Origin: Tetramitus jugosus
Taxonomy: Eukaryota; Protista; Heterolobosea
Length of the DNA: 64,000 nt
Direction of reading: 5' to 3'
NCBI GenBank assembly: GCA_937625935.1
Contig: OW569346.1
Coordinates: forward strand, 1-64,000
The position numbers and the translations under genes were made by a program. Below, one piece after another: positions 1-19,958 of this stretch (its first letter is position 1; each line of letters starts with the position of its first letter). Under the pieces are notes generated by a model, which was given only the letters and a program-made list of their open reading frames with translations, did no database searches and was not told the origin of the DNA.

Positions 1-674
1 CAAACCCAAACCCAAACCCAAACCCAAACCCAAACCCAAACCCAAACCCAAACCCAAACCCAAACCCAAACCCAAACCCAAACCCAAACCCAAACCCAAA
101 CCCAAACCCAAACCCAAACCCAAACCCAAACCCAAACCCAAACCCAAACCCAAACCCAAACCCAAACCCAAACCCAAACCCAAACCCAAACCCAAACCCA
201 AACCCAAACCCAAACCCAAACCCAAACCCAAACCCAAACCCAAACCCAAACCCAAACCCAAACCCAAACCCAAACCCAAACCCAAACCCAAACCCAAACC
301 CAAACCCAAACCCAAACCCAAACCCAAACCCAAACCCAAACCCAAACCCAAACCCAAACCCAAACCCAAACCCAAACCCAAACCCAAACCCAAACCCAAA
401 CCCAAACCCAAACCCAAACCCAAACCCAAACCCAAACCCAAACCCAAACCCAAACCCAAACCCAAACCCAAACCCAAACCCAAACCCAAACCCAAACCCA
501 AACCCAAACCCAAACCCAAACCCAAACCCAAACCCAAACCCAAACCCAAACCCAAACCCAAACCCAAACCCAAACCCAAACCCAAACCCAAACCCAAACC
601 CAAACCCAAACCCAAACCCAAACCCAAACCCAAACCCAAACCCAAACCCAAACCCAAACCCAAACCCAAACCCA
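1..674. repeat. Terminal telomeric array (CCCAAA)n, i.e. TTTGGG on the G-rich strand
   Basis: Uninterrupted hexamer array from base 1, with the C-rich strand 5' at the window start, as expected for a left chromosome end. Confidence 0.97.
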
Positions 675-1235
675 CCCAAGACCCAAAATAAGAGGTACTT
701 GAGGGAAAAGGAGGCTGTCGAAGCGGCAATGGCCAAACGACACAAAACAACTCCTTCACAGTCCACATGGGACTCTTGCAACGTGAATACAACCGTTGTA
801 TCTAAGAGAGTGAGAGATACAAAGGGTTGTACGTTAATGCAGAGTGCACCTCGCATCAAGAAACGCAAACTTGATAGCATGGACTACAAGTGGTACTGAA
901 CCATAAGATTCGTAGTCAGGATAAACCGTACGGGGTACGGCTCCGACTACAGTGCAAATCGCCAACGGCCAATTAAAATGGTCCTACGGACCATTTTTAT
1001 CGGCCCAATGGGCATTTGCAATCTTCCAAGGTTCAAGACTTTTGTGCAGCCAAGTTGACCTGCACTTTTAGTATAAATAATAAAGTTGTGGTGTAGAGTG
1101 CTCATGTTTAGGCACCGCACTAGATTTGCGACCAGCCCGAATACCTGTGTTGCACGTAAATATACCACAACTAACAAACAACAACAACATCTCACTCGCC
1201 ACTCTCGCGCCCCATAGTGGAGTGTTTGAACCCAA
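665..1235 (+). mobile_element. 5'-truncated distal copy (pseudo-LTR) of the Penelope-like element: end of the RT ORF plus 3' UTR
   Basis: By eye identical to 3180..3750 (offset 2515 bp); encodes the same C-terminal peptide ending LDSMDYKWY*. Confidence 0.95.
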
Positions 1236-3414
1236 ACCCAAACCCAAACCCAAACCCAAACCCAAACCCAAGAAACTTGACGTCAGCAATGACATCCTCC
1301 ATTCGTCGGCTCGTGCTCTGATCCAAGAAGCATGGAGAAAAAGACACAATGCTCCAATTGTTCAAAACCTGAACGGCATTGACAATGAGGCCCTATTGAG
1401 ACTCGTCACAAATGAAGAATGGATCATTTGTGACACAGACAAGAACTTGGGCACCGCTGTCTGGCACAAAGACAATTACATTGAAGAATGTAAGAAACAA
1501 CTTGAAAGCCCAGTGTACAGCATAAGAGAGAACAAAAGATACACAGTCTCAACAATCAAGATTCTCACACACTGGTGCATTGATAAGATCTCAAATTTGC
1601 ACCCATCTATGGGTGAACACCTACGGAAAACAAGACAAATTGAGGATATCAATGAATTGTCCATTCCCAAGTTTTATTTGTTGCCAAAAGTGCACAAAGA
1701 CAAACTCCAAGGTCGACCAATTGTCGCCAGCCATAGTTGGGTCAACACTGAAGCATCCAAACTGCTCAGCATTAGACTCCGTCTAATGATCACTCAACTA
1801 CAGCAAAGACGAGACCAGGGTTTACTACCAGTAATGCCCATTGTTTCATCTTCATATGAAGCGAAACTGGTTCTCAACAAATGGTGCTTGCAGAATGGAG
1901 CAACGTGGGAATTCACAGTACATCCAAAGCTGCAAACCTACAGCTATGATTTCACTGCATTGTACACCAATTTGAGACATGACGTCATCAAAACAAATAT
2001 GGAGTACATCTTTGAAATGATGCAACAACTTGAACCAAACACTTGGACAAGTCAAGAAATTGGTGCAATGAAATTGTTATTGCATTTTGTGTTAACCTGC
2101 ACATACATTAGATGTGAGGAACTCAACAATAGCATTTTTAAACAAGTAATTGGCCTTCCAATGGGCACAAATTGTGCGCCTGAATTAGCCAACCTTGTGC
2201 TACTTGCTTATGAGTTGCAACACTTGACCAAAGTCAACAGATCCCACTGCATTGCAGTGAGGTACATTGACGATTTGTTCATTGCTTGCACAAAAGAGTG
2301 CATACCTACCATTGTCAACATGTACAATGGTTCGGATTTGAAACTCTGCAAAGCAGACAATAATGTTTTCCTGGATTTGCACATCCAATTGGAAAAGTAT
2401 TATGAGAACTTTGCAGTTCCATTATGGCGCTTTCACTTCAATGTCTACCAGAAGCCATTGAACAAGTACATGTACTCCATGTACAAGTCAGCGTCTTCAT
2501 TTGCAGCAAGGAAAGGTCTGATCACAGGTGAGTTGGTAAGATATGCTCGCCTTGTTGATCACTTCAAACAATTCGATTCAATTCGAACATTGTTTGCCTC
2601 TCGGTTAATCCGAAGAGGTTATGACCACCATTTCGTTCAACGAATGTTCAAAAAGAACAATTACTTTGCACTCGTTGAACGATACTGCAAATCAATTGAC
2701 TGGCAAGCCAGAGTGATCAAGTACCAACAAAAATTGGACTTGCAACACAAACCAAAAATTCCACCAATTTGGAAAGTGTTACACTCTGGCAGTGGCATCA
2801 ATTATCGACAATTGATAAATGCCATTTCTCTCTTCAATGAGATTGACTTGCCAAAGGAATTGGTCATTTGCAATGTCAGACTTCCCAACATTAGGGAAGT
2901 TCTGCACGCATGCAAAACCAAATTCAACACTTGGGTGCAACAATGTGATCAAATGCCAAACGAAGAAGAAAAGAAGAAAATGGCAAGAACATTGATGGAC
3001 GTTGTTGTTGGTAACCACAAACGACGTTGGCAGCGTACTTCATTTGCTGCACAACGACTGATCCGATCATTTTCGGAAAGGGGAAGTGGTTATTCAACAA
3101 TTCGACGCCAGTTGCAATTGCGACTTCGCAAAACATCACGCGGGTGCGTGATGCTGACGAAGTCAGCAACGCACCTGCGCCCAAACCCACCCAAGACCCA
3201 AAATAAGAGGTACTTGAGGGAAAAGGAGGCTGTCGAAGCGGCAATGGCCAAACGACACAAAACAACTCCTTCACAGTCCACATGGGACTCTTGCAACGTG
3301 AATACAACCGTTGTATCTAAGAGAGTGAGAGATACAAAGGGTTGTACGTTAATGCAGAGTGCACCTCGCATCAAGAAACGCAAACTTGATAGCATGGACT
3401 ACAAGTGGTACTGA
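1126..3414 (+). CDS. Penelope-like reverse transcriptase. The listed start is a TTG in the upstream copy's UTR; the true N-terminus is probably missing.
   Basis: Motifs: DTDKNLG, FYLLPKVHK..GRPIV, YDFTALYTN, QVIGLPMGTNCAPELANL, RYIDDLF, FLDL, VYQKP, GELVRY, LIRRGY. Basic C-terminal tail with an NLS-like RIKKRK. Confidence 0.92.
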   Translation: MRPARIPVLHVNIPQLTNNNNISLATLAPHSGVFEPKPKPKPKPKPKPKKLDVSNDILHSSARALIQEAWRKRHNAPIVQNLNGIDNEALLRLVTNEEWIICDTDKNLGTAVWHKDNYIEECKKQLESPVYSIRENKRYTVSTIKILTHWCIDKISNLHPSMGEHLRKTRQIEDINELSIPKFYLLPKVHKDKLQGRPIVASHSWVNTEASKLLSIRLRLMITQLQQRRDQGLLPVMPIVSSSYEAKLVLNKWCLQNGATWEFTVHPKLQTYSYDFTALYTNLRHDVIKTNMEYIFEMMQQLEPNTWTSQEIGAMKLLLHFVLTCTYIRCEELNNSIFKQVIGLPMGTNCAPELANLVLLAYELQHLTKVNRSHCIAVRYIDDLFIACTKECIPTIVNMYNGSDLKLCKADNNVFLDLHIQLEKYYENFAVPLWRFHFNVYQKPLNKYMYSMYKSASSFAARKGLITGELVRYARLVDHFKQFDSIRTLFASRLIRRGYDHHFVQRMFKKNNYFALVERYCKSIDWQARVIKYQQKLDLQHKPKIPPIWKVLHSGSGINYRQLINAISLFNEIDLPKELVICNVRLPNIREVLHACKTKFNTWVQQCDQMPNEEEKKKMARTLMDVVVGNHKRRWQRTSFAAQRLIRSFSERGSGYSTIRRQLQLRLRKTSRGCVMLTKSATHLRPNPPKTQNKRYLREKEAVEAAMAKRHKTTPSQSTWDSCNVNTTVVSKRVRDTKGCTLMQSAPRIKKRKLDSMDYKWY
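1231..1271. repeat. Interstitial telomeric tract (CCCAAA)6CCCAA between the two element copies
   Basis: Directly visible; same orientation as the terminal array. Confidence 0.95.
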
Positions 3415-3750
3415 ACCATAAGATTCGTAGTCAGGATAAACCGTACGGGGTACGGCTCCGACTACAGTGCAAATCGCCAACGGCCAATTAAAATGGTCCT
3501 ACGGACCATTTTTATCGGCCCAATGGGCATTTGCAATCTTCCAAGGTTCAAGACTTTTGTGCAGCCAAGTTGACCTGCACTTTTAGTATAAATAATAAAG
3601 TTGTGGTGTAGAGTGCTCATGTTTAGGCACCGCACTAGATTTGCGACCAGCCCGAATACCTGTGTTGCACGTAAATATACCACAACTAACAAACAACAAC
3701 AACATCTCACTCGCCACTCTCGCGCCCCATAGTGGAGTGTTTGAACCCAA
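1272..3750 (+). mobile_element. Endonuclease-deficient Penelope-like retroelement (Athena/Coprina-like), probably 5'-truncated
   Basis: PLE-type RT, no GIY-YIG motif, partial tandem duplication, telomeric repeats at the 5' junction, and a 3' end of GAACCCAA. Confidence 0.88.
3412..3750 (+). other. Structured 3' UTR of the retroelement (second copy at 897..1235)
   Basis: Nested complementary segments, distal-copy coordinates: 897-902/1030-1035, 905-909/1021-1025, 912-917/945-950, 926-931/935-940, 953-959/1014-1020, 975-984/988-997, 1044-1049/1060-1065, 1085-1095/1161-1171. Confidence 0.7.
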
Positions 3751-5128
3751 GTCAACTTCAATTTTTTTTTTTCTACCTAAAAACTCAAAAAGTTTACCAA
3801 CACATTTCTCTGTCTATTTTTCACCCATATTTCAAAAATTAACCTTCTTTATCTATGTTTAATCAGTATGTTGGTTTATTTTGATCAGTGCATCAGAGAT
3901 TCAGTTTGATGTTCTTTTGTAAATCAAAATATTTTCGGGAGTTGCACCCTCCATCGTTTTATTATGTTTTTTTATTCTTTACAATAGAATAAGCAGATAA
4001 TATGTTGTTCTACAGTGTTACGCTTTTTTATCCTTCTTAACTATTTTTGTTTGCTCTGAATATCTCCCAAGCACAACTTCGAAATATCAGTGAGTTGAGA
4101 ATGACTTCTATTACAATTCTAATGGTTATATACTTTGCCTCTCGGTTAAATAATACTTCTGTGGTGACTTGAACTCATTGCAGTTATTTTTTATTCCTGG
4201 GTGCTGTGCACTCAATATCTTCATCTGATAAAAACCATCCCAAACACTTTACTATGAACAATATAATATTATCCATGTCCTATTTTCTTGAAAAAATGTA
4301 TTTTCTTCCTTTTTGCATCACCGGATTTGAATTAATACCTGACATGCTTGTTTGAAAAAGAATGAGCTCAAAAAAATCATTGTTATTTTGTCTTCCATTG
4401 GCCTCTTCTCGAAAAATGCTTCCTGGCCTCACTATTCCTTAGAAAAATAATCGACTTCCTCATTTTGTGTATTTTTACAATGATGACTAAATAGGATTCA
4501 CTTATCTTGGTATTTAGAGCTCTTTCCTATGTTTGATCAGTCATTTATCATCCACTCTTTTAAAGATAATTACAGTTGAAAATTTCCATTTGTGCACGAG
4601 TTTGCTGAATAATCGGAATACAATTTTCCAAAAATAATGGAATTTTTGTAATCTACGTCCTTATATTGACTTAGAATAGCCTTATTCATAGTCAGTGACA
4701 AATTTTGATGTATCTGGTATGCATGTCCTCTACTCTATATCTCCGATAGGATAGCATGAAGTCAAAAAAAAGAGTCGGACAAAAAGAATCAATGAATATG
4801 TGAAAGAGTAATAGAGAAACCTAATACAGTTGTTAGATCTGAAATATCATATAAATCAACTGATCTGTTAACTCGTAGTTCTGAAAAACGATTTTACTGA
4901 GCAAATGGTTTTTTTTTGACCAAAGCCCAAAAAAAAAGCTTTTTTTTTACATGAAGCAGTTTTTATACTCGAAAAAATGACTTGTTTTTATGATTGAGAC
5001 AAGAGGGTATGTCGTTACGTGCTCAAACCAACCTACATCGTCCGCATTTTTTGTGCTCTTTCTAACAACACCAGCAGCATGGCTCGAAACCGCCTGGAAG
5101 CCTGGTTTGGGTCGTAGTATAATTACCA

Positions 5129-5150
5129 CCCAAACCCAAACCCAAACCCA
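5129..5150. repeat. Interstitial telomeric tract (CCCAAA)3CCCA; a second short tract lies at 5268..5281
   Basis: Directly visible; same polarity as the terminal array. Confidence 0.85.
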
Positions 5151-16744: not shown

Positions 16745-18259
16745 TTAACAATACTTTTGTGTCTCAAAGTTTGCCAAGGAAAACTTGACTTCGCGTCTGA
16801 AGATGTTCGATGGTATACGAGCGAACATGTCGAGTAGCTGGCAGTTAAAGGAAGCCGGGCCAACATCTGGTTGACTACTGGCCATCTCAGCACACACGCC
16901 TGTATAAGCAAGTGCAGTTGAAACAGCTACCAAGGGGTCTGACACTGACGCAAAGCAACCCGTGATCGCACTAACTACACAACCAGCACCAGTTATGCTA
17001 GTTAAGAGAGGTACATTGTGGTGGATGCGAACAATTCTTGTGCCATCAGAGACAATATCGATGGGTCCTGTAATCGCAGTAATGCACTTGTATCTTGAGG
17101 CTAGTATTCTTGCAACCAAATCTCCATCTTGTGAGTTGCCTGATGAATCCACTCCCTTGGACATTGATGAGTCATCAAAACATAGAGATTCCATCTCACC
17201 TTGATTCCCTTTTAGTATTGTAACATATGAACTCATGAGCAACTTTTTCACTGCTTCCTTTCGAAACTTGCTAGCTCCACAACCCACAGGATCGAGTATA
17301 ACTGGCTTCCCTAAACGAGATGCATTGGCAGCAGCCATACACATTGATTCAATTGAATAATTATCTAGTGTGCCAATATTCAATACAAGGGCATTTGAGG
17401 CTGAACTTAACTCTTGCATCTCTTCATGGGCATGAGCCATAACTGGGGAAGCACCAACTGCCAAAATAGCATTCGCTGTTAATTGTGTAACCACATTGTT
17501 TGTAATGTTATGAACGAGTGGTTTTTGTTGTCTTACATTGCGTAATGCATCTACCATTTTTTCACGGAGTTCGAGGTAGACTGGACTATGGAAACGCTTA
17601 TCTAACATGAATCGCAACGCTCCGGCGCTCTTCTCACAATTATCCGATGAGGAGATTGCTGAAATGACGGCAACTCCCGTAACACCCGTATCCAAAATAC
17701 TCTGTATGTTTGACATGTTGATTCCACCAATGGCAACAACAGGTGTGCGTACCATCTCTGCCTGAGAAGCAATGGTTCGCAACGTTTCGAGACCTATGGG
17801 TCGAGCATCAGTCTTTGTCATTGTATCGAAGATGGCATCTGTTCCAACATAATCTGCACGACTCGATAACACAGCATCTAAAACCTGCTCTCTATTGGAC
17901 ACTGTGACTCCCAAAATACGATCAACACCAATCAGTTTCCTGACATCAACCGGGTCCATATCCGATTGTCCCACATGGACGCCATCAGCCCCAGAAGCCA
18001 GCATAACATCTGTTCTATCATTTATGATCAAGGGCACATTGTGAGCTCTGGTAATCTTCAACAGGGAACGAGCCGTTTGTACAAAACTACGCGTATTAGG
18101 CACAGGATCTTTCTCTCTCAGTTGAATGATGGAAGCACCACCCAGTATGGCTTGTTTGACAGTTTCCTCCACCGTGGATCCTCTATTTGCACACAATCGT
18201 GAGCCAATCACAAAATACAAACTATAGTCAATCAGACTGCGGCCAGTTGTCGAAAGCAT
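16745..18259 (-). CDS. THI6: Bifunctional thiamine-phosphate synthase / hydroxyethylthiazole kinase (ThiE-ThiM, THI6-like)
   Basis: ThiE motifs IIQLREK, LIINDR, GVHVGQSD, VVAIGGIN; ThiM motifs PLVHNITNNV, ALVLNIGTL, ILDPVGCGAS, ITGAGC. First ATG at 18259. Confidence 0.93.
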   Translation of the reverse strand: MLSTTGRSLIDYSLYFVIGSRLCANRGSTVEETVKQAILGGASIIQLREKDPVPNTRSFVQTARSLLKITRAHNVPLIINDRTDVMLASGADGVHVGQSDMDPVDVRKLIGVDRILGVTVSNREQVLDAVLSSRADYVGTDAIFDTMTKTDARPIGLETLRTIASQAEMVRTPVVAIGGINMSNIQSILDTGVTGVAVISAISSSDNCEKSAGALRFMLDKRFHSPVYLELREKMVDALRNVRQQKPLVHNITNNVVTQLTANAILAVGASPVMAHAHEEMQELSSASNALVLNIGTLDNYSIESMCMAAANASRLGKPVILDPVGCGASKFRKEAVKKLLMSSYVTILKGNQGEMESLCFDDSSMSKGVDSSGNSQDGDLVARILASRYKCITAITGPIDIVSDGTRIVRIHHNVPLLTSITGAGCVVSAITGCFASVSDPLVAVSTALAYTGVCAEMASSQPDVGPASFNCQLLDMFARIPSNIFRREVKFSLANFETQKYC

Positions 18260-18362
18260 TTCTTCCAAAAAGTAGTCTGTTTTCTGATCCCAATGTTTTT
18301 CTCCGAGTGTGGAAACTTTTTGTTAAGAAAAGATGATCCGGATGAATTTTTCAGTTCAGGGG

Positions 18363-18379
18363 TTCTAATCTGATTAGAA
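18363..18379. promoter_or_regulatory. Perfect palindrome TTCTAATC-T-GATTAGAA in the divergent thiamine-gene spacer
   Basis: Inverted repeat is directly visible; a regulatory role is inference. Confidence 0.35.
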
Positions 18380-18455
18380 GATTTGATCTCCATAAGACAA
18401 CAACAACAATTCACGCTTGTGCCCCACGAAAACACTCACCAACTACCAATATAAA

Positions 18456-19958
18456 ATGCTCTTCTCGAAAGAAATTATAGAGTCAATTACTCCACTTCTT
18501 GACCAGATATTTTCACATGATTGGACAATTCAAATGATTGAGGGCACACTGCCAACCGACAAGTTTCGTGGCTACATTATTCAAGATGCCATCTATCTTC
18601 ATCACTTCCTTCGTGTCCTGGCCATTGTTGCGAGCAAATGTTCTGTGACTGAGAATATGCAGCAAATTCTAAAGTTTTTGAGTGACACCATTCCTTCTGA
18701 AGTCCATATGCAAGAGGGTTACTTTAAGGAACTGGGAATACCACCCTTGGAGGAAATGTTGCAAGATCTCGATATTCAATCTCCAAATAATTTCATGTAT
18801 TGCACATTTTTGAAGGAAGTTAGTACAATGGGCAGTTTTGCTGAAGGTCTGTGTGCAGCTTTCGCTTGTCCATATGTCTATATGGTCGTTGGTCAACACA
18901 TCAAAGAACATGCAAAGCCAAACAATCCTTATTGTAGGTGGATCAATGAATATGCTGATCCAGCTTTTTGCGAGGCAGTACAACAGATGGCCAAGATTAT
19001 TGACCAAGAAGGGTTGAACCTCTCGCGGAAACAGAGAAATGTGTGTCGCTCCCATTTTGTTNNNNNNNNNNNNNNNNNNNNNNNNNNNNNNNNNNNNNNN
19101 NNNNNNNNNNNNNNNNNNNNNNNGCTACATTCGTCCATGATGAGTCAAAGTAGAATGCCGTGTGTTCTCACGATTGCAGGCTCGGATTCTGGTGGAGGGG
19201 CTGGTATACAAGCCGACTTGAACACATTTACAGCGAATCGCGTATTTGGTACGACTGCCATTGCTGCATTGACTGCTCAAAATTCACAGGGCATCCAGAA
19301 CATTCATGTACCACCGAGTGAATTCTTGATTGATCAAATTAATTCTGTGTTGAGCGACATGGATGTCCAGGTTGTCAAAATTGGCATGCTGCACGACCAA
19401 GAGGTCATTGAGAAAGTTGCACATAGGTTAAAGTCGGAGAACGTGAAAATCATTTTGGATCCAGTGATGGTGGCAACAAGTGGAGGTAGACTTCTAAAAG
19501 ATGCTGCCTTGGACATTTTAGTGTCAAAATTGCTCCCCATTACCTATTGTATTACTCCAAATATTGACGAAACGGAGAGTCTTTTAAAGGTTCTACATGC
19601 TCCGTTTTCTTCTGTCGACTCTATCGAGGCAATGGAACGAGCTGCCAGATATGTATCAGAACATTGTAAGATTCCATTCGTTTTGGTCAAAGGAGGTCAT
19701 CTTCCATTCTCTCAAAGATGCGTGGATGTCCTATACGATCTAGAAAATGATCGCATTCACATGTTGGAAGGTCCATTCTTTAACACTCCCAATACTCATG
19801 GTTCGGGATGCAGTTTGGCTGCTGCTGTCGCAGCCAATTTGGCTAATGGATTTCCGATGCTCGAGAGTGTGGCCAACGCAAAGAAGTATGTTTCTGGTGC
19901 CATTCAGCGAGGAGTTTCAATCGGTAAGGGTTGCGGTACCTTGAATCACAGTTCTTGA
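18456..19958 (+). CDS. TenA (thiaminase II) followed by ThiD (HMP/HMP-P kinase), probably one fusion; the junction lies in a 62-N gap at 19062..19123
   Basis: TenA motifs [28 protein letters not shown]; ThiD motifs [49 protein letters not shown]. Confidence 0.88.

Follow-up and report, generated by a model that had tools for sequence, protein, structure and literature searches.

A chromosome tip in a heterolobosean very probably layered from two truncated copies of an endonuclease-less, telomere-attaching Penelope-like element

The window analysed here is the whole stretch of 64,000 nucleotides (G000:C3:1-64000), so that position 1 is the contig end. From the tip inwards, the telomeric (CCCAAA)n array is followed by a 571-bp 3' fragment, a (CCCAAA)6.8 array, a 2,479-bp copy ending GAACCCAA and unique DNA. 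All elements of the order reported in a preliminary description of this DNA, including the 5' end of both copies facing the tip, were present in the sequence. The features, all on the forward strand, are as follows:

1-674: terminal telomere, C-rich strand, (CCCAAA)~112, about 670 bp with the chromosome tip at the left
665-1235: distal 571-bp 3' fragment with the last 78 ORF2 codons, the stop codon (897-899) and the 3' UTR
1229-1271: telomeric spacer (CCCAAA)6.8 separating the two copies and continuing, in register, the CCCAA tail in which the distal fragment ends
1272-3750: proximal 2,479-bp copy, 5'-truncated inside ORF2 and followed by non-telomeric DNA starting GTCAACTTC
1273-3414: ORF2 remnant, a stop-free frame of 713 aa with the C-terminus MDYKWY and the stop codon at 3412-3414
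1438-1452: Penelope-like N motif DKNLG within the ORF2 remnant
2260-2280: RT active-site motif RYIDDLF (RT5), with D355/D356 invariant in the 40-sequence alignment A2
3144-3174: perfect nested hairpin GTGCGT..CTGAC-GAA-GTCAG..ACGCAC, 5 nt upstream of the seed
3180-3189: telomere-like internal seed CCCAAACCCA, the exact 5' end of the 571-bp fragments at C3 and C10
3415-3750: 3' UTR, predicted to be strongly structured (MFE -109.3 kcal/mol, z = -4.85 versus shuffles)
3587-3599 (proximal) and 1072-1084 (distal): TATAAATAATAAA box, the only invariant block of alignment A3
3737-3750 (proximal) and 1222-1235 (distal): 3' terminus GTGTTTGAACCCAA of both copies
3751-5128: AT-rich, ORF-less subtelomeric block directly proximal to the 2,479-bp copy
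5129-5150: telomeric relic (CCCAAA)3.7 with the polarity of the tip, closing the block 3751-5150

Tandem Repeats Finder reported an array of period 6 and 114.7 copies (99% matches) at 1-687 and a further one in the spacer at 1229-1271 (period 6, 7.2 copies, 100% matches). The boundary between telomere and distal fragment can be placed only to within 10 nt, as CCCAAACCCA is also the element's own sequence at 3180-3189, and it is with this internal seed that the 5' end of the fragment coincides. The impression that the two copies are identical was borne out, since 665-1235 and 3180-3750 match at 100% over 571 bp; a 571-bp fragment with an identical 5' junction is also present at C10:609698-610268. 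The proximal copy contains neither ORF1 nor the first ~520 ORF2 codons, has no start codon and matches the 3'-terminal 2,479 bp of the full-length C10 copy at 100% identity. The reported 2.5-kb copy is thus present, at 2,479 bp, but it is not full length and begins inside ORF2 of a 5.04-kb element. A recently active element had been suggested; the window's own copies are dead and 5'-truncated. The block 3751-5150 is the older layer that received the proximal copy; beyond its first bases, the part at 3751-5128 exhibited no detectable relationship to a 991-bp terminal block family described below.

The two copies share the same 3' end, as had been noted before, and the terminus GTGTTTGAACCCAA is identical at 10 of the 12 genomic 3' junctions printed, the exceptions being an old copy on C22 with two substitutions and the right-end copy on C9, from which the terminus is missing. 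The last five bases are complementary to TTGGG of the G-strand. As the terminus of the proximal copy directly adjoins non-telomeric DNA, CCCAA is part of the element. Telomeric repeats joined at 3180 were also found in contigs of run X1, which derives from the same organism, and the hairpin just upstream may act as a pause site for the RT. The last ~170 nt of the 3' UTR are conserved in old and young copies (alignments A3/A4), and covariation for the predicted fold is weak (3 of 32 pairs). The T/A-rich core of the TATAAATAATAAA box is unchanged in all copies compared, including two elements from another organism, and the box is a putative promoter.

The intact element was found only once, as a copy of ~5.04 kb with two ORFs at the right end of C10 (G000:C10:604655-609694). 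Its ORF1 encodes 309 aa with a helical N-terminal half and an Arg/Ser/Lys-rich tail and exhibits no sequence similarity to the upstream ORF of the relative L036. ORF2 is open over 1,232 codons in this copy versus 713 in the window copy, and consists of ~490 unassigned residues followed by the PLE N motifs, the RT, the thumb and a family-specific C-terminal extension of ~230 aa, which occupies the place where canonical PLEs have GIY-YIG and is conserved in the relatives P0001-P0003. The ORF2 of P0003 (35% identical) begins at the first PLE motif and does not contain the N-terminal region. AlphaFold2 models of the N-terminus and of the C-terminal extension reached a mean pLDDT of 33 and 50, respectively, and the folds are uninformative; the model of the extension is all-helical at low confidence. 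In addition to the N motif, the remnant in the window contains LPKVHK/GRPIV, YDFTALYTN, GLPMGTN, RYIDDLF, FLDLHI, VYQKPLNKY and the thumb-like block KGLITGELVRYARL, so that the RT with its PLE motifs and intact YIDD, as previously reported, can be read from DKNLG through the thumb in the frame 1273-3414. Residues D78, K79, N80, G82, D355 and D356 are invariant across 40 relatives (alignment A2), and ORF2 also contains an NLS-like basic patch, KKRKLD. Pfam returned a weak RVT_1 match for the remnant and nothing else. The first in-frame ATG of the window copy lies at nt 1609, past the DKN motif, and the open frame through the upstream telomeric spacer is due to chance only.

Neither ORF1 nor the N-terminus of ORF2 nor its RT-to-C-terminus part produced a Pfam match to GIY-YIG at E<=1, and no other nuclease family was matched at this threshold in the ORFs of the element. 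The strings GIY..YIG, CxC, CxxC and CCHH were not found in the element proteins, and GIY..YIG was absent from 259 of 259 sequence matches compared. No GIY-YIG gene lies near a copy of the element, the only two such loci of the genome being on C16 and C42, contigs that carry no RT copy; the profile search agrees with the absence of this domain noted at the outset. Athena and Coprina elements are all described as carrying a hammerhead ribozyme beside their 3' telomeric repeats (PMC8557442). Here, Rfam found none at E<=1 in window positions 1-5000, nor at E<=10 when the full-length locus was scanned in its entirety, a test of low power because Rfam also found none in a Puccinia relative with a CUGAUGA..GAAA string. 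The only CUGANGA..GAAA string of the element is part of a plain hairpin.

Judged from its sequence motifs (DKN, RT1-7 with YIDD, thumb) and from its RT grouping, the RT of the element is classed as Penelope-like. The RT tree comprised 80 sequences, including 11 EN+ and six animal sequences. The element and P0001-P0003 form one clade (SH-aLRT 99). A split with an SH-aLRT of 98 puts 11 of 11 EN+ and 6 of 6 animal sequences on one side and this clade on the other, endonuclease-less one. RTs of Puccinia sorghi share this side and sit in a different subclade; the element from this fungus is followed by (CCCTAA)11 and then by host genes, with like polarity. Identity to fungal RT sequences amounts to about 25-30%. 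Profile A2, built from the element and its kin, retrieved proteins with DUF8422, HTH_animal and GIY-YIG (PF01541) as well as animal PLE-type proteins, with E values from 1e-60 to 1e-130, and the element and the retrieved PLE proteins all align to one RT-core HMM of 511 positions. The host TERT (L038) did not match this core HMM and was therefore unusable as an outgroup. When the PDB was searched with the RT of the element, Tribolium TERT was the sole eukaryotic RT match (E=3.5e-4), among generic prokaryotic RTs. Protein-atlas rows naming Rotifera are regarded as leads only.

Copies of at least 99.5% identity are located at C3-left, C10-right, C17-left and C48-right, always with the 5' end tipward, and 6 of 6 pieces at this level are oriented as expected and no more than 8 kb from a contig end. 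About 15 older fragments obey the same rule of terminal location and polarity. The exceptions are two degenerate internal remnants (C50:168.6 kb and C7:598 kb) and a few inverted old fragments near ends (C29, C21, C6); terminal-only location and fixed polarity, as anticipated, hold for all young copies. The assembly contains four 5' truncation points (reference positions 2571, 2845, 3275 and 4481, the last seen twice) and a fifth, at window position 2624, is present in contigs of run X1; in line with the anticipated variable truncation, each of these points is capped by CCCAAA repeats. The 3' flanks vary from 0 to 3 or more telomeric repeats, in register. C17 and C48 share six substitutions absent from C3 and C10, indicating a second source lineage. 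In groundwater and soil metagenome contigs the same 3' end is joined to telomeric repeats or to other DNA, and in relatives with amino-acid identities of 59%, 44% and 35% the 5' caps are of the CCAAACCC type or the contig terminates in ...AAACCCAA. The host genome encodes TERT. A 991-bp element lies directly beneath the terminal telomere at 40 ends at least. It shares the polarity of the PLE, varies in its 5' truncation but not in its 3' end, and occurs in stacked chains whose units are spaced by ~25 bp. At C10, C17 and C48 this non-coding block is distal to the young PLE copies, so that later terminal additions or end-to-end recombination are also needed.

Taken together, it is very probable that the tip consists of two dead, 5'-truncated copies of an endonuclease-less telomere-attaching PLE in a heterolobosean host, layered by the following cycle. 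From the anatomy of the element and the published Athena/Coprina model, an RNA ending ...GAACCCAA would pair with the TTTGGG 3' overhang at a telomere that is short or has become exposed, and the RT of the element would then extend the G-strand by copying this RNA, an event after which the 5' end of the element would point to the tip. We infer that copying would frequently stop early, as may have occurred twice at the CCCAAACCCA seed just 3' of the strong hairpin, and that telomerase or a new element would subsequently add repeats or another layer. The layered end state itself is seen in the sequence, and the history of the window would read as an older subtelomere that received the 2,479-bp copy, ~7 repeats, the 571-bp copy and finally the ~670-bp telomere. 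The layered structure and the TERT gene suggest that chromosome ends may be extended alternately by the element and by telomerase.

A distinctly unlikely alternative is that the chain arose mainly from DNA-level copying between ends, by break-induced replication or subtelomeric recombination seeded in telomeric tracts, with the element as an old passenger. Such copying would account for the common 5' junction of the 571-bp fragments at C3 and C10, for the 991-bp block that is 100% identical between C10 and C7 and forms identical-score groups among other ends, for the position of this block distal to young PLE copies at three ends, and for the six variants common to C17 and C48. Recombination would, however, carry junctions along, and the long copies differ in 5' truncation point, 3' repeat number and proximal flank; the 3' end is always the same nucleotide, a full copy has both ORFs open, and further distinct junctions exist in other environmental samples. 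Inter-end recombination and retrotransposition could coexist.

We consider it very improbable that the tandem of fragment, seven repeats and copy is an assembly artefact from collapsed or mis-joined reads of different ends. No Logan contig bridges 1222-1277, where the tandem junction is as given by the assembly only; the contigs break at 640-683 and 1222-1277, and every part is repeated elsewhere at 100% identity. Yet a comparable fragment-plus-copy arrangement with a different junction was assembled independently at C10, contigs from the same organism join telomeric repeats at 3180, and all sampled contig ends were each resolved into a telomere of about 0.7-0.9 kb. It is likewise very improbable that the element is a site-specific inserter in place of an end-primer, with telomeric repeats targeted by an unrecognised nuclease that would reside in the N-terminus of ORF2, in its C-terminal extension or in a factor of the host. 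Such a nuclease could be sought in the about 490 and 230 ORF2 residues that have no assignable fold, and interstitial insertion could likewise place three young copies between two telomeric tracts with the 991-bp block distal to them. Against it stand the searches for nuclease families and Cys/His motifs reported above, the N-terminal region missing from P0003, the all-helical, though low-confidence, C-terminal model and the distal copy of the window, which directly adjoins the terminal telomere.

A wider reading of the retrotransposition cycle, put forward tentatively and in our estimation rather unlikely, is that the PLE is the autonomous half of a two-part system building most ends. The PLE RT would copy the 991-bp element onto G-overhangs as a non-autonomous passenger, a TATA box conserved in every 3' UTR would serve to drive the following unit in the manner of HeT-A, and the hairpin and CCCAAACCCA seed would form a built-in stop returning the end to telomerase. 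If true, this would constitute hybrid end maintenance by retroelement and telomerase in a culturable protist.

Among mobile elements, endonuclease-less PLEs are the closest relatives of telomerase, for whose origin they have been proposed as models; to date, most records come from rotifers, fungi, a lycophyte and a diatom. The basic phenomenon has thus far been described in rotifers, fungi, plants and diatoms, and our literature search found no report of an endonuclease-less telomere-attached PLE in the Naegleria group of amoebae. The element extends the range to Heterolobosea (Discoba), very distant from the known hosts, and thus supports an ancient and broad distribution. The evidence is unusually clean, with a near telomere-to-telomere assembly, one intact two-ORF copy, several 99.5-100% identical copies stacked with telomeric spacers and further junctions in independent environmental samples. 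If the host can be cultured, telomere-primed reverse transcription and its interplay with telomerase would be directly testable. Two features deserve the attention of specialists, namely that a hammerhead seems to be lacking and that truncation recurs at a telomere-like seed inside the element.

Coprina comprises endonuclease-deficient PLEs of fungi, found also in Selaginella and Phaeodactylum, e.g. Coprina-1_Alen of Ascochyta lentis, whose coil-containing ORF1 (PMC13159263) is comparable to ORF1 of the intact copy on C10 with its helical N-terminal half. Compared by description, Coprina shares with the window element the lack of GIY-YIG, the location at chromosome ends with telomeric repeats on both sides, the 5' end facing the tip, and an ORF2 with DKN, RT1-7, thumb and an NLS-like basic patch. 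The window element differs in its heterolobosean host, TTTGGG telomeres and CCCAA 3' tail, and in having its own C-terminal extension ending MDYKWY and an unassigned N-terminus of ~490 aa; neither a hammerhead motif nor direct repeats of 63/255 bp were seen in it. Athena elements (Gladyshev and Arkhipova 2007, as cited in PMC8557442) are endonuclease-deficient PLEs of bdelloid rotifers. By description, they resemble the window element in their two-ORF layout, with an ORF1 of coiled-coil type in Athena and a helical, basic-tailed one here, in the extended N-terminus before the RT, in their telomere-attached, stacked 5'-truncated copies with short telomeric spacers, and in the reverse-complement telomeric repeat at the 3' end; unlike the window element, they are described as rotifer-specific with hammerhead motifs by the 3' repeats (PMC8557442).

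The canonical EN+ PLEs (Penelope/Poseidon, Neptune, Nematis) and Naiad/Chlamys with an N-terminal EN have the RT core, N motifs and thumb in common with the window element, and the partial tandem of a 5'-truncated upstream copy and a longer one is similar to the pseudo-LTR arrangement that PLEs typically show. In contrast to these groups, the window element carries GIY-YIG at neither end of ORF2 and lacks CxC and CCHH linker motifs; it is further set apart from EN+ PLEs by young copies restricted to chromosome ends and by the SH-aLRT 98 split. Head-to-tail terminal arrays with fixed polarity and variable 5' truncation are also formed by HeT-A/TART/TAHRE of Drosophila. The 3' promoter of HeT-A drives the next element downstream, and the TATA-like box in the 3' UTR of the window element could act in the same way. 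The RT of the Drosophila elements is of the LINE class and that of the window element of the PLE class, and Drosophila is without telomerase, whereas the host studied here retains TERT and perfect (TTTGGG)n tracts, with which its elements, unlike HeT-A/TART/TAHRE, alternate.

In Tetramitus jugosus, a Penelope-like element (PLE) is stacked in layers with telomeric repeats at chromosome ends, with a fixed polarity and with variable, telomere-capped 5' ends, and the same genome holds an intact source copy with two open reading frames (ORFs). The assembly comprises 26.35 Mb in 56 contigs, and the window is the initial 64 kb of contig C3, whose tip is organized as follows:

1-687: terminal C-strand telomere (Tandem Repeats Finder: period 6, 114.7 copies, 99% matches)
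665-1235: distal 571-bp copy, 100% identical to 3180-3750
1229-1271: (CCCAAA)6.8 spacer between the distal fragment and the proximal copy
1272-3750: proximal copy of 2,479 bp
5129-5150: telomeric relic in the polarity of the tip

Both copies share the terminus GTGTTTGAACCCAA. The proximal copy passes directly, with no telomeric repeats between, into AT-rich non-telomeric DNA that begins GTCAACTTC and runs to 5128. The order telomere, 571-bp fragment, (CCCAAA)6.8 and 2.5-kb copy given in the preliminary description proved accurate in every particular by repeat finding and self-comparison, and the two copies, described there as identical, are so over all 571 bp. The recent activity that it claimed holds for the family but not for the two window copies, which are 5'-truncated and dead, because the proximal copy starts inside ORF2 (at codon 520) and has no start codon ahead of the DKN motif. 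At a distance of 17 kb from the telomere (16745-19958) the window carries two neighbouring divergent genes of the thiamine pathway, both fused, one encoding TMP synthase and hydroxyethylthiazole kinase and the other TENA and phosphomethylpyrimidine kinase. A DEAH helicase encoded in the window is closest, among named organisms, to proteins of Willaertia magna (65%), Acrasis kona (63%) and Naegleria fowleri (60%), which places the host in Heterolobosea.

When the host genome was searched at the protein level, the same reverse transcriptase (RT) emerged in an open frame of 1,273 aa on contig C10, at its right end (locus L022). From the tip inward, this end consists of the telomere, a non-coding block of 991 bp, ~12 copies of the telomeric repeat, a 571-bp fragment whose 5' junction is identical to that of the window fragment, the letters AACC and a complete element of ~5.04 kb with the following coding regions:

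L022:7149-6220, minus strand: ORF1, 309 aa; N-terminal part helical, tail rich in Arg, Ser and Lys
L022:6190-2492: ORF2, 1,232 codons, first in-frame Met at codon 84
ORF2 residues 1-490: no matches; missing from a 35%-identical relative
ORF2 residues 490-950: PLE N motifs, RT and thumb
ORF2 residues 950-1232: C-terminal extension kept in three relatives, including the terminal SMDYKWY

ORF2 opens 30 nt past the ORF1 stop in a different frame. In the terminal telomere of C10, an irregular C-rich run (CCCCCCCCCCCACAACAACCCCACCCCC...; L022:9480-9560) breaks an otherwise perfect array; it is probably long-read noise and could also be real repeat variation.

Young copies were surveyed in the terminal stretches of 12 contigs and by BLAST against the full element.

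Young copies of the element (length; identity to the C10 copy; contig end)
C3 copy (window): 2,479 bp; 100%; left end
C10 copy: full length; reference; right end
C3 and C10 fragments: 571 bp each; 100%; left and right end, respectively
C17 copy: 2,207 bp; 99.5%; left end
C48 copy: 1,777 bp; 99.6%; right end

As the preliminary description had anticipated, every young copy is terminal, lying at most 8 kb from a telomere-bearing contig end with its 5' end towards the tip, and 5' truncation is variable: the assembly contains four truncation points (reference positions 2571, 2845, 3275 and 4481, the last common to both 571-bp fragments), each capped directly by CCCAAA, and Logan contigs add a fifth. 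At their 3' ends the young copies reach one invariant nucleotide, which is followed by 0, 1, 2 or at least 3 in-register repeats and then by differing DNA; the CCCAA tail is invariant and is retained where no telomere follows. Target-site duplications were neither seen at the copies nor expected. Six substitutions are common to the C17 and C48 copies and missing in those of C3 and C10, and the family has therefore had two or more active source lineages. Fragments of greater age, at 70-92% identity, are found with this polarity close to many further ends, and the exceptions are all old: an internal remnant at 168.6 kb on C50, a 172-bp 3' piece at 598 kb on C7 and some pieces in reversed orientation close to the ends of C29, C21 and C6. 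The C50 remnant (168443-169755, midway along a contig of 329 kb) is a degenerate, internally deleted copy of 71-92% identity that retains the terminus GAACCCAA plus ACCCA, followed by TTTGAGTAG, which resembles the 5' start of the full element; a chromosome end that became internal may have left it behind.

Other samples were searched as Logan contigs from four runs with a query of 3,761 letters. Runs of the same organism contain telomeric repeats joined at window positions 3180 (the fragment junction) and 1974 (the C48 junction), as well as a capped truncation at 2624 that is absent from the assembly, and the variant letters of C17 and C48 were dominant in all four runs. In a groundwater metagenome the 3' end at 3750 is joined to ACCCAAACCCAAACCCAAA in one case and to unrelated DNA in another; in a soil metagenome it is joined to ACCCCA and other DNA. 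Close relatives in other assemblies behave like the element: two short contigs of GCA_037189345.1 (59% and 44% identity) carry 5'-truncated ORFs with CCAAACCCAAACCCAACCC caps, and the contig of an element from SRR22870111 (35% identity) terminates in ...GCAAACCCAA. Two ENA metagenome contigs of 4,403 bp each (L039 and L040) hold a related two-ORF PLE without endonuclease; both contain the same 4,403-bp unit in circularly permuted form, implying a head-to-tail tandem, and the unit junction reads CCCTTAAACCCTAA, so that the tail fits another host telomere type.

The 991-bp non-coding block (L022:7841-8831, equivalent to C10:610340-611330) lies directly beneath the terminal telomere at at least 40 contig ends, none of them in the window; for C12, C19, C20, C21, C35, C37, C40, C49 and C52 the contig extents are inferred from the positions of this block only. 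It is always on the plus strand at left ends and on the minus strand at right ends. Some of its variants match at 100% identity from one chromosome end to another, many copies lack part of the 5' side yet reach a common 3' end, and chains of it have spacers of ~23-32 bp. On C10, C17 and C48 it is distal to the young PLE copies. From its sequence, the block reads like either a non-autonomous telomere-primed element or a subtelomeric repeat spread by recombination.

End-to-end copying by recombination certainly occurs in these subtelomeres, as the 100% identity of the block between C10 and C7 attests, and could be proposed to have built the PLE copies as well. It may account for the fragment junction shared by C3 and C10, but it leaves unexplained why every long copy has a truncation point and flanks of its own. 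That the chain in the window is an assembly artefact is unlikely, given the independent structure on C10 and the existence of junction contigs; the spacer junction itself (1222-1277) is unbridged in the Logan contigs, which break at the repeat.

Assignment of the RT to the PLEs, as originally proposed, is upheld by its motif set, which is that of PLEs, by profile searches and by its position in an RT tree. Pfam returned a sub-threshold RVT_1 match only. An exhaustive phmmer search yielded 4,127 relatives, and a GIY..YIG string occurred in 0 of the 259 sequence hits examined. A profile built from the element and 39 relatives retrieved proteins combining GIY-YIG with DUF8422 and HTH_animal, two PLE-associated Pfam families, as well as animal PLE-type proteins. 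Look-ups in a protein atlas gave sub-threshold leads only, to rotifer DUF8422/HTH_animal clusters, and a direct phmmer search of the PDB gave no matches to the RT. The tree was computed by maximum likelihood (IQ-TREE, LG+C20+F+G4, quick search) from 80 HMM-aligned RT cores over 501 columns; it was midpoint-rooted, for drawing only, because the host TERT was unmatched by the PLE core HMM and unusable as an outgroup. The element and three close relatives form one clade (SH-aLRT 99) inside a set of nine sequences without endonuclease (96), and a split with a support of 98 separates the element from all 11 GIY-YIG-bearing and all six animal sequences. Two RTs of Puccinia sorghi fall on the element's side of this split.

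[quoted passage not shown] The two GIY-YIG loci of the host are on C16 and C42, both free of RT copies. A nuclease recognizable only at the fold level might still hide in ORF2, within residues 1-490 or the C-terminal extension, where the predicted structures are poor (pLDDT 33 for the N-terminus and 50 for the extension); we consider this unlikely.

For attachment to chromosome ends, the published model for Athena and Coprina (PMC8557442, PMC13159263) suggests a cycle in which the CCCAA tail of the element RNA would pair with the TTTGGG overhang, the element RT would extend the G-strand, and the new end would be capped by telomerase or by another element; a TERT gene is present in the host. 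A perfect nested hairpin inside ORF2 (window 3144-3174) lies 5 nt upstream of the telomere-like seed CCCAAACCCA (3180-3189), exactly where both 571-bp fragments start. An RT stalled at this seed would leave the cDNA end TGGGTTTGGG, a ready telomerase substrate, and hairpin and seed may act as a programmed stop.

The 3' UTR was aligned across all copies in the genome together with two elements from another organism. A single block of it proved invariant, the T/A-rich core of the TATAAATAATAAA box (window 3587-3599 and 1072-1084), ~150 nt from the 3' end, which is too far upstream to be a polyadenylation signal for an RNA ending in CCCAA. Judged by sequence, the box could be an outward promoter reading into the next unit, which, if so, would explain the 571-bp fragment ahead of both longer copies. 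Compared with shuffled sequences, the 3' UTR has a far stronger predicted fold (z = -4.85); the consensus fold is weak (-9.96 kcal/mol, compensatory pairs 3/32), and the idea of a structured UTR therefore relies on the single-sequence z-score and a recurrent hairpin with a GGG loop. Near the stop codon this hairpin reads CCGTAC-GGG-GTACGG (window 3440-3456), and relatives have other stems around the same loop (TGCGAAC-GGG-GTTCGCA and GTTGTAC-GGG-GTATAAC; L034, ~2340-2365, and L035, ~2800-2830), which hints that an RNA element is conserved here.

Hammerhead motifs are described from Athena and Coprina, next to their 3' repeats (PMC8557442). Rfam matched no hammerhead ribozyme in the window, the full-length locus or eight related loci, a negative of low power because the Puccinia positive control, which contains a CUGAUGA...GAAA string, was missed by the Rfam hammerhead models too. 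The single regex match of a core-motif scan (CUGANGA..GAAA at 3154) was rejected as a plain hairpin.

In full-text searches of the literature, neither PLEs nor Coprina elements turned up for Heterolobosea or Naegleria; the hosts on record comprise rotifers, fungi, Selaginella, Phaeodactylum and a shrimp (PMC13159263). Among named organisms, Puccinia sorghi has an element with the same telomere-attached polarity, its contig consisting of an RT gene, ~115 nt, (CCCTAA)11, a gap, (CCCTAA)10 and ordinary genes. Possibly distinctive of the Tetramitus element are the apparent lack of a hammerhead, its C-terminal extension and a truncation directed by the seed.
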